A stretch of 64,000 bases of DNA from Macrostomum lignano (GCA_002269645.1 NIVC01000628.1:372001-436000); one strand, 5' to 3'. Numbered from the stretch's first letter, positions 7,684-15,643 are shown. Numbers and translations are program-made. Notes: generated by a model not told the origin, from the sequence alone.

Positions 7684-10600
7684 ATGGAGCGAACTTCTGA
7701 CTTAGCTAGATTGTCAGGTGAGTGCCTAAGTGGCAAAAAGGCTTTGAATGAAATTCATTGACAGCAGCTGCAACAGCTATAACTTCTACCCTCCCTCAGC
7801 CCTCAGTTGGCAGCTATTCCCTCTTACCCTCCCTCAGCCCTCAGTTGGCAGCTATTCCCTCTTACCCTCCCTCAGCCCTCAGTTGGCAGCTATTCCCTCT
7901 TACCCTCCCTCAGCCCTCAGTTGGCAGCTATTCCCTCTTACCCTCCCTCAGCCCTCAGTTGGCAGCTATTCCCTCTTACCCTCCCTCAGCCCTCAGTTGG
8001 CAGCTATTCCCCTCTTACCCTCCCTCAGCCCTCAGTTGGCAGCTATTCCCTCTTACCCTCCCTCAGTCCTCAGTTGGCAGCTAATCCCCTCTTACCCTCC
8101 CTCAGCCCTCAGTCGGCAGCTATTCCCTCTTACCCTCCCTCAGTCCTCAGTTGGCAGCTATTCCCTCTTACCCTCCCTCAGCCCTCAGTCGGCAGCTAAT
8201 CCCCTCTTACCCTCCCTCAGCCCTCAGTCGGCAGCTAATCCCCTCTTACCCTCCCTCAGTCCTCAGTTGGCAGCTATTCCCTCTTACCCTCCCTCAGTCC
8301 TCAGTTGGCAGCTATTCCCTCTTACCCTCCCTCAGCCCTCAGTCGGCAGCTAATCCCCTCTTACCCTCCCTCAGCCCTCAGTCGGCAGCTAATCCCCTCT
8401 TACCCTCCCTCAGCCCTCAGTCGGCAGCTATTCCCTCTTACCCTCCCTCAGTCCTCAGTTGGCAGCTATTCCCTCTTACCCTCCCTCAGCCCTCAGTCGG
8501 CAGCTATTCCCTCTTACCCTCCCTCAGTCCTCAGTCGGCAGCTATTCCCTCTTACCCTCCCTCAGCCCTCAGTCGGCAGCTATTCCCTCTTACCCTCCCT
8601 CAGCCCTCAGTCGGCAGCTATTCCCTCTTACCCTCCCTCAGTCCTCAGTTGGCAGCTATTCCCTCTTACCCTCCCTCAGCCCTCAGTTGGCAGCTATTCC
8701 CTCTTAGCTGCGGCAGCCAATCCCCTCTATATTTTTACAGTCGAGCATCTGAACTCGCACAAGTTCGCTTCGAAAGGTCCGGATTGCAGGGGATGCCTCA
8801 TCAGACGCGAGCAATGTCCCAAAACTGGGGAAGCTTTTTGTAAGTGTTAAACTAATTATCTTTATGCCTCACTTTCTGGATAAGAGATTGGAAGAGTCCT
8901 AAAACTTTCTGTCACGCACACTCATACACACGCTCACACAAAGTGTACGCTCGTACAGCGGCCCTTAGGCATGTACACTTTCTGTGCCTTCGGGGTTGGC
9001 CATCATGGCTGTATCTCACGACAAACCTCCGGCCAATTTTCGTTCACAAGCTCTGTCCCCCGAATCTACTCGTAAGTGTCCATGTTGTTAACATCTCGAT
9101 TTTATTGATCCAACTTTCAGACATGATTTACCACGCCATCCTTCGAGCCCACCATCTGTTCCTGTTTTGTAACGAGAAAGCCGAATCTTGTCAGGGCGTC
9201 ATCGACCTTCGACTACCAATGTGAGCGCGCCCCCCCCCCCTGAACTGGCATCCACTCAGATAAACTGGCACTCACTCAGATGAACTGGCACTCACTCAGA
9301 TGAACTGGCACTCACTCAGATGACCTGGCACCCACTCAGATAAACTGGCACCAACTCAGATGAACTGGCACTCACTCAGATGAACTGGTACTCACTAAGA
9401 TGACCTGGCACCCACTCAGATGAACTGGAACCCACTCAGATGAACTGGAACCCACTCAGATGAACCGGCACTCACTTAGATGAACTGGCACTCACTTAGG
9501 TGAACTGGCAATCACTCAGATAAACTGGCACCCACTCTAATAAACTGGCAGCTACTCAGATAAACTGGCACCCACTGTAATTAACTGGCACCATCCCCCA
9601 AAAGACGCCCCCAATTAAAACCCCGGCCTCGCTAGTATAACAAATTATCTCGAACTCTCAAACTGTCAGCCGCGAATTCAAGCCGGACTCCAGCTGGCCT
9701 CACTGCGGCGAGTGCTTCGAGCTTGGCGCCGCCGCCGCCGACGCCGCCGACGCCTGGACGGTCGGCGTCCCGCTGTCCGGCGGCGGCCGCTGGCGGGGCC
9801 CGTTCAACGCCTACGCAAAGTCAGCCGTGTGCGGCCTGGAGGCACCTGGCGGCGAGGACGAATACGAGGACGGCGAGGAGGCCAACGAGGGAGGCGAGCT
9901 CGACGAGTTGCTGGCCTCGCTGCCCGAACGACCGGCGCCCGCAGTCACCGAGTCGGCGTCTGCCTCAGATTCGGGAAGTTTTTCGAGGTAGGCCTAGTTC
10001 AAGCAATAGCAGCTCATTCTACTTGTCTATGGCCCAAACATCGTCATATACTACTATTAACTACATACTACTATTTCATTACATACTACTATTTCACTAC
10101 ATACTACTATTTCATTTACATACTACTATTTCACTACATACTACTATTTCACTACATACTACTATTCACAACATACTACTATTGACTACATACTATTATT
10201 TCACTAGACACAACTATTTCACTACATACTACTATCTCACTACATACTACTATTTCACTACATACTACTATTTCACTACATACTACTATTTCAGCGGCAA
10301 GCCGCGACCTCCACCACCGCGTCGTCGGGGTTCGGTGCTCAGTGGAGGCCTCCCGGCGGCATCTTCCTCGTCGCCGTCGCCGACATTGCCGCTCGGCCAG
10401 ACAACGACTCTGTCGCCGCCGCTGCCAACATCGTCAGCGCCGGCGACGAAAGAGAAGCCGCGCCCGCCAGTGAGGTCGACTACATCCGGGCAGCCGGCAC
10501 GTCCTATTTCAACGGAGCCTGACAGGCCGCAGCTGCCGCCGAAACTGCCTCCTTCATCTACCGAAACTCAGCCGTCATTGCCACCCAAACTGCCTCCATC

Positions 10601-13600: not shown

Positions 13601-15643
13601 TAATACCATCAGCAGAAGGAAAAACATGCTATAGATTCGCAAAGTAGATTAGCAATCCATTTTATCCTGTAGTATAATATTTGGGAATAGATTAGCAATC
13701 CATTTTATCCTGTAGTATAATATTTGGGAATAGATTAGCAATCCATTCTATCCTCTAGTATAATAGGTGGGAATAGATTAGCAATCCATTCTATCCTCTA
13801 GTATAATAGGTGGGAATAGATTAGCAATCCATTCTATCTTGTAGTTTAATAGGTGGGAATAGATTAGCAATCCATTCTACCCTCTAGTATAATAGGTGGG
13901 AATAGATTAGCAATCCATTCTATCCTCTAGTATAATAGGTGGGAATAGATTAGCAATCCATTCTATCTTGTAGTTTAATAGGTGGGAATAGATTAGCAAT
14001 CCATTCTACCCTCTAGTATAATAGGTGGGAATAGATTAGCAATCCATTCTATCCTCTAGTATAATAGGTGGGAATAGATTAGCAATCCATTCTATCCTCT
14101 AGTATAATAGGTGGGAATAGATTAGCAATCCATTCTACCCTCTAGTATAATAGGTGGGAATAGATTAGCAATCCATTCTATCCTCTAGTATAATAGGTGG
14201 GAATAGATTAGCAATCCATTCTATCCTCTAGTATAATAGGTGGGAATAGATTAGCAATCCATTCTATCCTCTAGTATAATAGGTGGCAATAGATTAGCAA
14301 TCCATTCTATCCTCTCATACAATAGGTGGGAATAGATTGGCAATCCATTCTATTCTCTCATACAATAGGTGGGAATAGATTAGCAATCCACAAAACACCC
14401 ACCCGTGCCACCGCACCGCAGCTGATATTCGCCATCAACTTTCCGAATTCGAGCAAGTTCAGCAGCATCGAGGAGCTGCTGCTGCACTATCACAAGAATC
14501 CCCTGCCAACTAATTCGCTGGGTACATCGGATCTGCTGCTGCGGATTCCTTTTCAGTTGTCTACGTAAGAATGTTGACCATGATGTCAAGGGCCGCGCTG
14601 TACACACTGTGTGAGCGTTGTGTAATGAGAGCGAAATGGGCAGAATTGCCTCAGCGCCAGGGTCAGAAGCCTCCGAATATTTATTACTATATAAACCGCC
14701 TTCAGGAGATGCCAGCACGAACTCAGCCGCCTGGTCAGGCTGCCAGACGAGCAGGTGATTCGCAGCGGCACGGCTGATTCGGCTGCGGCGAAGTTGAGCC
14801 GACACGGCGGCGTCAAGCGCGGCGGTAATTTCTACTTGCATCTGAACAAGGACCGCAAGGGCGGAGGCGGAACCCTGCTAGCTATTGCTCCGGATGCGGC
14901 CAGCTCAGGGGAGGTGCACCGGTTGCGCCTGGTTACCATGGAGACCGGATTTATCGGACAACCGCAGGTGATAATTTATTGATTGAGTAGTTCCCCTCGT
15001 GATCTAGTTACGGGCGAATTGCTGAGATGTCAAGGCTGAGGTCAGAAGCTACATGTAGTTTATTTAAAAACTTGTATTCGTCTACACATACTAGTATAGA
15101 TATAAACACGTTTGAGTTATATGGTGAGAAGCTCAATGGCTTTCAGCTCAACGTGGGGCAAGTCAGTGGAATCCCAGTCTGTGGAATCCTGCAGTCAGTA
15201 GAATCCCAGTCTGGAATGAAATCCCATGGAGCAAAAAATCCACACGTTGAGCCCCTTCCTCTCAGCATCACTGCCCCTCAGCCATTTCATTTCAGACGGG
15301 GCGCCACTTTATTTCATAGGGGGCGCCTCTTTATTTCATAGGGGGGCGCCACTTTATTTCAGAGGGGGGGCGCCACTTCATTTCATAGGGGGGGGGCGCC
15401 TCTTCATTTCATAGGGGGCGCCACTTCATTTCATAGGGGGCGCCACTTCATTTCATAGGGGGGCGCCACTATATTTGAGAGGGGGGCACCACTTCATTTC
15501 ATAGGGGGGCGCCACTTCATTTCAGGGGGGCACCACTTCATTTCAGTGGGGGCGCCACTTGATTTGATGGGCGTCATGTACTTTTACAGCCAGACGAGCA
15601 TGCTCTCCTGTCTAAGCCCCATTTATGGCGTTCTGATCAATGA
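7684..15643 (+). CDS. Multi-exon signalling adaptor: PH domain, about 20 x PPLPPK Pro-rich repeats, two clear SH2 domains and a third degenerate SH2-like segment (SH3BP2-like core)
   Basis: Exons: 7684-7717, 8741-8839, about 8969-9071 (frame unresolved), 9121-9220 and 9670-9987 (PH: YHAILRAHHLFLF..QGVIDLR), 10295-11527, 12157-12441 (SH2: RLIRHASGNGVYMLRG..HETVEAMLFYH), 12729-12809, 13366-13504, 14422-14564 (SH2: LWHYGGK..DGTYALRMD..KFSSIEELLLHYHKNPLP), 14706-14967, and a tentative last exon 15590-15643. GT-AG phases are consistent from 9121 onward. Confidence 0.75.
7776..8706. repeat. 38-bp intronic minisatellite, about 24 copies
   Basis: Unit CAGCTATTCCCTCTTACCCTCCCTCAGCCCTCAGTTGG inside intron 7718-8740. 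Confidence 0.95.
9241..9591. repeat. 20-bp intronic minisatellite, about 17 copies
   Basis: Unit TGAACTGGCACTCACTCAGA in intron 9221-9669. Confidence 0.95.
10040..10294. repeat. 18-bp intronic minisatellite, about 14 copies
   Basis: Unit CTACATACTACTATTTCA; the last copy ends TATTTCAG and supplies the acceptor at 10293-10294. Confidence 0.9.
10520..11396 (+). repeat. Coding 45-bp tandem repeat (PPLPPKLPPSSTE[S/T]Q), about 20 copies
   Basis: Frame-preserving repeat in the adaptor exon; 20 LPPKL cores counted in ORF 9723..11531. Confidence 0.95.
11581..12134. repeat. 11-bp intronic minisatellite, about 50 copies
   Basis: Unit GCTACTCAATA in intron 11528-12156. Confidence 0.95.
12458..12580. 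repeat. 19-bp intronic minisatellite, about 6 copies
   Basis: Unit TGTTCTCATGGGTGACTCG. Confidence 0.9.
13647..14388. repeat. 43-bp intronic minisatellite, about 17 copies
   Basis: Unit AATAGATTAGCAATCCATTCTATCCTCTAGTATAATAGGTGGG in intron 13505-14421. Confidence 0.95.
15298..15562. repeat. About 23-bp minisatellite with variable G-run
   Basis: Unit G(n)CGCCACTTCATTTCATA, about 11 copies. Confidence 0.85.

Follow-up and report, generated by a model that had tools for sequence, protein, structure and literature searches.

Here we describe a gene on the plus strand of a 64,000-nucleotide stretch of the Macrostomum lignano genome (GCA_002269645.1, NIVC01000628.1:372001-436000; hereafter the window, with positions counted from its first nucleotide). 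The locus is predicted to be one gene of 11 coding exons, running from an ATG at 7684 to a stop codon at 15873-15875 and encoding approximately 939 residues. We consider it probable that this is, as a whole, a single gene for a non-catalytic scaffold protein, which from N- to C-terminus would comprise a conserved N-terminal module, an acidic segment with one tyrosine (DEYEDGEE), a Pro/Ser-rich linker bearing 20 repeated proline motifs, and three SH2-type domains (units 1 to 3, the first two also called SH2-1 and SH2-2).

Gene structure and paralogues

The original prediction chained ten exons between 7684 and 14967, followed by a short terminal exon. With small boundary shifts, these ten exons were found to be delimited by AG acceptors and GT donors and to form a single open frame of 898 codons. 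The junctions linking exons 6 to 10 (12441/12729, 12809/13366, 13504/14422 and 14564/14706) are phase-matched, as had been proposed, and occur as identical joins in an independent gene model, P0001.

Coding exon 1 (7684..7717) supplies the ATG and the peptide MERTSDLARLS, and ends at a GTGAGT donor. Across the first junction the peptide DLARLS|VEHL aligns with GLDQLSVSLL at the N-terminus of the paralogue P0010, which supports exon 1; P0001 differs from it in its 5′ part, where unrelated upstream open reading frames (ORFs) have been fused instead. Exon 2 (8741..8839) starts the conserved, PH-like N-terminal module (…CRGCLIRREQCPKTGEAF) and is conserved with P0010 (CGYICRRE…), exon 3 (9121..9220) encodes the core of the module (YMIYHAILRAHHLFLFCNEKAESCQGVIDLRLP) and forms the block best conserved against P0010 (YYAVLRAKQLFLFHNEDSTQCKEVIIL), and exon 4 (9670..9987; guanine-cytosine (GC) content 0.71) holds the poorly conserved second half of the module together with the acidic, one-tyrosine segment (GEDEYEDGEE). 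Exon 5 (10295..11527) encodes the Pro/Ser-rich linker with its repeat array and the beginning of SH2-1 (βA/αA); P0001 enters this exon at a different acceptor, 10523, which is also in frame, so that residues 184-260 of the present model are skipped there. Exon 6 (12157..12441) encodes the main body of SH2-1 (GVYMLR… to PFDLE), and its donor, GA|GTGAGC, does overlap an in-frame TGA at 12443-12445, the apparent stop that had been noted originally. Exon 7 (12729..12809; 81 nucleotides, phase 2-2) provides the linker between SH2-1 and SH2-2 and the βA/αA part of SH2-2 (SLWHYGGKATCTD), a peptide conserved in P0003 and P0010. SH2-2 continues through exon 8 (13366..13504; βB-βD, DGTYALRMD…KFRIVV) and exon 9 (14422..14564; αB to βG, KFSSIEELLLHYHKNPLPTNSLGTSDLLLRIPFQLS, with a weak match to the SH2 domain of APS). 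Exon 10 (14706..14967) encodes the N-terminal two thirds of unit 3, a probable degenerate SH2 whose βB strand, GNFYLHLNK, contains no arginine, and exon 11 (15750..15875) encodes its C-terminal part (KFVHVEDKPELAALSLDRLVHILCANP…LYMKQ), with coding sequence at 15750-15872 and a TGA stop at 15873-15875. GC content is 0.49-0.71 in coding exons 2-11, 0.44 in the 34-nucleotide exon 1 and 0.31-0.57 in the introns.

Exon 11 is the point at which this model departs from the original prediction. It was found by scanning all phase-0 acceptors 3′ of 14967, encodes KFVHVEDKPELAALSLDRLVHILCANPSCLPQGFPRLYMKQ, is used by P0001, is conserved in P0002, P0005 and P0010, and was matched by tblastn with 100% identity over 15747-15872. 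The last exon proposed originally, at 15590-15643 on the plus strand (PDEHALLSKPHLWRSDQ followed by a stop codon), falls inside intron 10, directly 3′ of the 22-bp minisatellite of that intron, and is missing from P0001 and from all paralogues; we rejected it as the last coding exon in favour of 15750-15875. In all likelihood the segment belongs to the intron, and at best it could serve as an alternative 3′ exon that truncates the protein.

Relatives were sought with HMMER among 1.84 billion representative proteins, the query being an alignment of the contiguous translations of exons 6, 8 and 9. Eleven proteins matched, five of them members of the family; these five and three cluster co-members all come from M. 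lignano (TaxID 282301). P0001 (UniProt A0A1I8GWQ2, "SH2 domain-containing protein", 2139 residues, E 1.2e-75) represents a near-identical gene copy (99% identity), with three residue differences from the window outside the array, all conservative, and with internal joins that equal the four junctions named above plus 14967/15750. The diverged paralogues (P0003/P0013, P0002/P0012, P0005 and P0010/P0015) share 27-39% identity. In P0003, SH2-1 is followed directly by SH2-2; P0002 and P0005 extend through unit 3 to a terminal peptide homologous to exon 11; and P0010 (735 residues) has the N-terminal module, a proline-rich linker and three units. Judged from these models, the layout of units is kept within one protein in diverged paralogues of the same species, and the full layout is kept in P0010. 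UniProt model P0015 fuses a P0010-type paralogue to an SR-protein exon, which in the NCBI M. lignano assembly (NIVC01001873.1:168480-188644) is annotated only as a 54-residue fragment. No P0010-like exon was found within ±10 kb of that SR-protein exon, and P0015 is therefore probably another chimeric model.

Outside Macrostomum, the HMMER search at E <= 1e-3 returned only generic SH2 proteins. The best animal match beyond the genus, P0008 from the clam Mya arenaria, contains two SH2B-like SH2 domains and is annotated as 'corkscrew-like' or 'SH2B adapter protein 2-like'. P0006 (EP00040_P037519), from the choanoflagellate Diaphanoeca grandis, has three SH2 stretches (Pfam 88 bits) and matches the flatworm family with an E-value of 4.8e-6, a marginal similarity that is likely to be generic to SH2 domains. 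From these searches, the family looks lineage-restricted.

SH2-type units, N-terminal module and repeat array

On the evidence of family profiles, the Pfam score of a paralogue and structural matching, units 1 and 2 are both true SH2 domains, in line with the original claim that a second complete SH2 follows the first. The two units match each other by blastp (E 2e-5), and their family profiles, with paralogues added, align by hhalign over 104 columns with a probability of 95% (E 2e-8). A two-sequence profile of units 1 and 2 matched PDB chains over near-full domain length, led by NCK1 (1.4e-3) and followed by SH2B1, APS, SAP, SHP2, GRB10 and SHIP1/2; the sole non-SH2 entries were T-cell receptor α chains, which we take as chance. 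With the family profile of unit 1, all 14 PDB matches were SH2 domains (ABL1/2, HSH2D, p85α, tensin-like), as were the best 60 of 94 matches with that of unit 2 (p85α 4e-4, PLCγ1, VAV, SHP2, SYK, NCK, GRB2). Unit 2 of P0003 scores 30.3 bits against the Pfam SH2 family, above the curated cut-off of 21.

An AlphaFold model was computed from the P0001 segment aligned with the paralogues. It has the order αA-βB-βC-βD-αB in both units, at a predicted local distance difference test (pLDDT) score of 50-66 in unit 1 and 40-50 in unit 2; a model of exon 6 alone was uninformative (pLDDT 44). When the low-confidence model of the longer segment was compared with the PDB by Foldseek, the best 50 of 140 matches (E <= 0.001) were all tandem-SH2 proteins (SYK, ZAP-70, SHP-1/2, PLCγ1/2), with E-values down to 7.7e-7 over 216-289 aligned columns. 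The linker between the two units is short, at approximately 25 residues, and tblastn of the domains against the window detected no second copy.

Unit 3 is more divergent. Its family profile aligns with that of unit 2 over 80 columns in register (hhalign probability 56%, E 1.1e-4) and with units 1 and 2 together at E 5e-4. A 2025 review states that the FLVR arginine, through which phosphotyrosine is bound directly, is present in all but three SH2 domains (PMC12470777). Because the βB strand of unit 3 in the window lacks this arginine, we read the unit as a probable degenerate SH2 in which phosphate would not be bound canonically; the corresponding strands of the paralogues read FLVLRR, QLLLRR and SLVRLR.

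At the N-terminus, the original prediction had placed a PH domain. The module is conserved, GCLIRRE…YHAILRAHHLFLFCNE…CQGVIDL in the window matching GYICRRE…YYAVLRAKQLFLFHNE…CKEVIIL in P0010, and its first half resembles by eye the strands β1-β4 of a PH domain. The segment that follows, where β5-β7 and the helix would be expected, is unconserved with respect to P0010. Pfam gave no PH family at E-values up to 10 in the window or in P0010, PDB searches with the module as a single sequence and as a two-sequence profile gave neither a PH chain nor any other domain, and the region has a pLDDT of 26-48 in the AlphaFold model, which is uninformative on the seven-strand β-sandwich and C-terminal helix. 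The PH assignment is supported neither by Pfam nor by the PDB searches, and we describe the region as a conserved module of approximately 80-100 residues that is PH-like only in the sequence pattern of its first half, its PH fold being putative.

The repeat array (10524..11393, plus strand) lies inside the Pro/Ser-rich linker and consists of 20 LPPKL units of 45 bp (consensus QPPLPPKLPPSSTES), each matching the class II SH3-ligand pattern PxΦPxK. In the protein the unit is 15 residues long, QPPLPPKLPPSSTE(S/T), and at the DNA level the array was scored as a 45-bp repeat of 17.6 copies with 91% matches. The original count of 20 SH3-ligand repeats of the form PxxPxK agrees with ours: LPPKL occurs exactly 20 times, at a strict 15-residue period in 18 cases, and 17 of the motifs fit P..P.K strictly and 19 fit P..P.[KR]. 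PPLPPK agrees with PxΦPx+, the consensus for class II SH3 ligands, as well as with the preference for PxLPxK reported for the Crk N-terminal SH3 domain. This is the only exonic, in-frame array of the gene, and of the intronic arrays that of intron 4 (18 bp) alone shares a unit length divisible by three.

Tandem repeats are a general feature of the locus. Seven of the ten introns hold distinct minisatellites (7787-8706, 9241-9592, 10048-10293, 11573-12133, 12459-12588, 13645-14390 and 15281-15565), with units of 38, 20, 18, 11, 19, 43 and 22 bp in 7 to 51 copies and 85-96% matches, and these give rise to long spurious ORFs in a mechanical ORF list. A perfect 15-bp tandem repeat, CTGCATCTCTCCCAG, occupies 16001-16172 (11.5 copies, 100% matches), approximately 125 bp past the stop codon, in what is presumably 3′ untranslated or intergenic sequence.

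Alternative readings and neighbouring sequence

Several observations count against the reading of the locus as one scaffold gene with three SH2-type domains. The comparative support is drawn entirely from automated models of genes in this one species, and P0001 is itself chimeric, with retroelement ORFs joined on at either end, taking in the window ORFs at 1377-1760 and 2026-2385 and, past the stop at 15873-15875, retroelement-like ORFs at 18190-21752. On the window sequence, Pfam gave a lone SH2 match, in unit 2 and below threshold (15.9 bits against a cut-off of 21), while units 1 and 3 and the N-terminus went unmatched. The AlphaFold model is of low confidence (mean pLDDT 36.7), with SH2-1 alone in the 50-66 range, and it resolves neither unit 3 nor the N-terminal module. 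The profile of unit 3 matched no SH2 domain in the PDB, nor any in Pfam, and it aligns only weakly with unit 1 (E 0.033). The third, degenerate SH2 originally described is still probable in view of its in-register alignment with unit 2. Further contrary points, namely the variable copy number of the array, the loss of the FLVR arginine in a paralogue and a possible polyadenylation signal, are taken up with the alternatives that they favour.

The most serious of these alternatives concerns the array, which could be an in-frame minisatellite that is unstable and neutral, without any selected role, one PPLPPK motif being enough for the ancestral function; we hold this to be a real possibility, albeit one that falls short of probable. 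At the equivalent place a lone PPPLPPKP stands in P0003 and P0005, and the proline-rich linker of P0010 is not repetitive, so that the 20-unit array appears to be a lineage-specific expansion, and the near-identical copies differ in number, with 20 units in the window and 23 in P0001. Both the variable copy number and the absence from paralogues would fit neutral growth of the kind seen in the minisatellite-rich introns, nearly all of which bear a repeat of their own. The units match one another at 91% of DNA positions, and over whole units the distinct variants comprise 14 synonymous and 23 non-synonymous changes, near the 29% synonymous share expected at random. Against neutrality, the reading frame is held through all 20 units, the period is a multiple of three where the intronic periods are 38, 20, 11, 19, 43 and 22 bp (the 18-bp array of intron 4 being the exception), and in the LPPKL core all five distinct nucleotide variants are synonymous (p about 0.004). 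The last result points mildly to constraint on the motif itself, and it says nothing for copy number. From the comparison of copies and paralogues, the array is best described as a recent in-frame minisatellite expansion of one ancestral PPLPPK motif, variable in copy number; 'designed' multivalency is therefore uncertain, which weakens the original proposal of a highly multivalent scaffold.

A second alternative is that recognition of phosphotyrosine has been lost from the SH2-type domains of this family, which would instead form a phosphorylation-independent scaffold of pseudo-SH2 folds. All three units of the window are very divergent and lie below the Pfam threshold, the βB strand of unit 3 has no arginine, and units 1 and 2 of P0010 have lost the βB5 arginine (SFVVHGG and TFALLVD), from which it follows that phosphotyrosine binding is not conserved across the family. 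Nevertheless, the FLVR arginine at βB5 is present in unit 1 (YMLR) and unit 2 (YALR) of the window, in register with FLIR of NCK1, and is also kept in the P0002/P0003 group, and we regard this alternative as unlikely.

Third, the main product could end at the TGA at 12443-12445, with retention of intron 6 and polyadenylation yielding an SH3BP2-like protein with one SH2 domain and with the downstream SH2 exons used rarely or in another transcript. The TGA is in frame directly 3′ of SH2-1, and an AATAAA at 12681..12686 (plus strand), inside intron 6 and 236 nucleotides past the TGA, is a possible polyadenylation signal. Exon 7 argues for the long chain instead: an in-frame TAA at 12715, 12 nucleotides 5′ of its acceptor, and the lack of an ATG mean that it cannot start a separate coding sequence, and its peptide, LTAAFSASLWHYGGKATC, is matched in two other paralogue groups (LTDLLRTSLWHHGTKEFC and TSFLSASIWCLGDKPLC) that likewise join SH2-1 to SH2-2, which marks it as coding in this frame. 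In addition, exons 7-11 stay open for 245 codons over four further introns, and the donor GTGAGC equals the other donors of the gene in quality. We consider a main product with one SH2 domain very unlikely, and the single chain claimed originally, in which the proline-rich array precedes the SH2 units, is supported. A short, possibly minor isoform ending at this TGA could still accompany the long form, since the AATAAA at 12681 leaves room for one. Finally, that the locus is a decaying duplicate whose long open frame is residual seems barely credible, for although M. lignano, with its recently duplicated genome, has several near-identical and diverged copies, unit 3 looks degenerate and retroelement debris lies on the flanks of the gene, none of the 11 exons is damaged, the splice sites are canonical, no frameshift or stop interrupts the 939 codons, and only three conservative differences separate the gene from its second copy outside the array.

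Elsewhere in the window, a large actin exon at 23418-24416 on the plus strand matches Pfam Actin at 437 bits over profile positions 44-410, and an upstream exon must therefore encode roughly the first 40 residues. The minus strand carries an ORF for an FtsJ-like RNA methyltransferase domain with an alanine-rich C-terminal tail (37895-38854; 114.7 bits) and a single-exon ORF for an SR-type splicing factor (41745-42239), whose RRM, CCHC zinc knuckle and Gly- and RS-rich tails give an SRSF7-like layout. A fragment of a 6-phosphofructo-2-kinase domain is encoded by an exon at 62084-62554 on the plus strand (52.5 bits), and a GIY-YIG nuclease ORF at 4400-4948 on the minus strand, below threshold at 19.9 against 22.6 bits, may be the remnant of a Penelope-like retroelement.

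Proposed function and known systems

Lacking a catalytic domain, the long product would be best read as a docking or scaffold protein. Units 1 and 2 probably work in tandem to engage phosphotyrosine sites, with bidentate recognition as in known tandem-SH2 proteins, and could thereby anchor the protein at tyrosine-phosphorylated receptors or scaffolds. The repeat array would recruit many SH3-domain proteins simultaneously, and unit 3 would probably serve as a structural or phosphate-independent pseudo-SH2. We infer phosphotyrosine binding, SH3 binding and a selected role of high valency from sequence only. One may go further and picture a triple-SH2 scaffold family of Macrostomum's own, in which a hypervariable array of 20-23 motifs nucleates phosphotyrosine-dependent signalling condensates and copy number serves as an evolvable 'valency dial', a speculation to which we attach little credence at present.

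Taken singly, the SH2 domains, the class II SH3 ligands and the putative PH domain are all standard modules of phosphotyrosine signalling, and it is their combination that is unusual. Three tandem SH2-type units, conserved over at least three paralogue groups, together with a 20-fold proline-motif array were not found for any studied protein. A literature search for "three tandem SH2" and "triple SH2" yielded neither an account of any natural triple-SH2 protein nor anything about this Macrostomum gene. The original suggestion of undescribed biology is borne out in that this literature search retrieved no such architecture, with the qualification that the gene is already present in UniProt as an automated, unstudied 'SH2 domain-containing protein'. 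Its reach is further limited by the lineage-restricted appearance of the family and by the possibility that the array is a neutral by-product of a minisatellite-rich genome. M. lignano is a model organism for regeneration, and if the protein is expressed as predicted, it would offer a natural case of extreme multivalency with which ideas on avidity and condensates in tyrosine-kinase signalling could be examined.

Among known systems, SH3BP2 was the one to which the gene had been likened originally. SH3BP2 consists of a PH domain, a proline-rich region with few proline motifs and one SH2 domain, and has no catalytic domain. The order of parts is the same here (a module read as PH, a proline-rich SH3-ligand region, then SH2), again with no catalytic domain, and to this extent the comparison stands; the differences are the three SH2-type units and 20 tandem motifs of the flatworm protein and the putative nature of its PH fold. 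Specific sequence affinity to SH3BP2 did not emerge: no SH3BP2 chain is among the PDB matches listed (for the unit 2 profile, the best 60 of 94), and the matches spread over NCK, ABL, p85, PLCγ, VAV, SHP2 and SH2B/APS. The SH2B/APS/Lnk adaptors are similar in that, among single-sequence PDB matches, the APS SH2 domain ranks first, over the αB-βG segment FSSIEELLLHYHKNPLPTNSLGTSDLLLR (weak, E 0.25), and in that SH2B1 and APS are among the weak matches of the two-sequence profile. They differ in having one SH2 domain as opposed to three units, Pfam finds here neither PH nor Phe_ZIP, the Phe-zipper dimerisation domain, and the richer family profiles favour p85, PLCγ, VAV and ABL. Because the top PDB families shift with the profile used, from NCK to ABL to p85/PLCγ, we set aside a specific affinity to either SH2B or SH3BP2 as unsupported.

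Similar in another respect are the tandem-SH2 proteins (SYK/ZAP-70, SHP-1/SHP-2, PLCγ and PI3K p85), which likewise have two adjacent canonical SH2 domains and which provided the top Foldseek matches; in function, units 1 and 2, with their short linker, look similar to the tandem SH2 of SHP2 or PLCγ. Whereas these carry a kinase, phosphatase or lipase domain or a p110-binding coiled coil, none of these was detected here by Pfam, and the flatworm protein adds a third SH2-like unit and the proline-motif array. The choanoflagellate protein P0006, itself uncharacterised, shares three tandem SH2 domains and the lack of a detected catalytic domain, so that a triple SH2 is not unique in sequence databases; it differs in that all three of its SH2 domains are canonical and in having neither a proline-motif array nor a PH-like module. 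As to the array, repeated class II PxΦPx(K/R) motifs are familiar from C3G and Sos, the ligands of Crk and Grb2 SH3 domains. These proteins carry guanine nucleotide exchange factor domains and about four such motifs outside any tandem-repeat array, whereas the M. lignano gene sets 20 of them in tandem.

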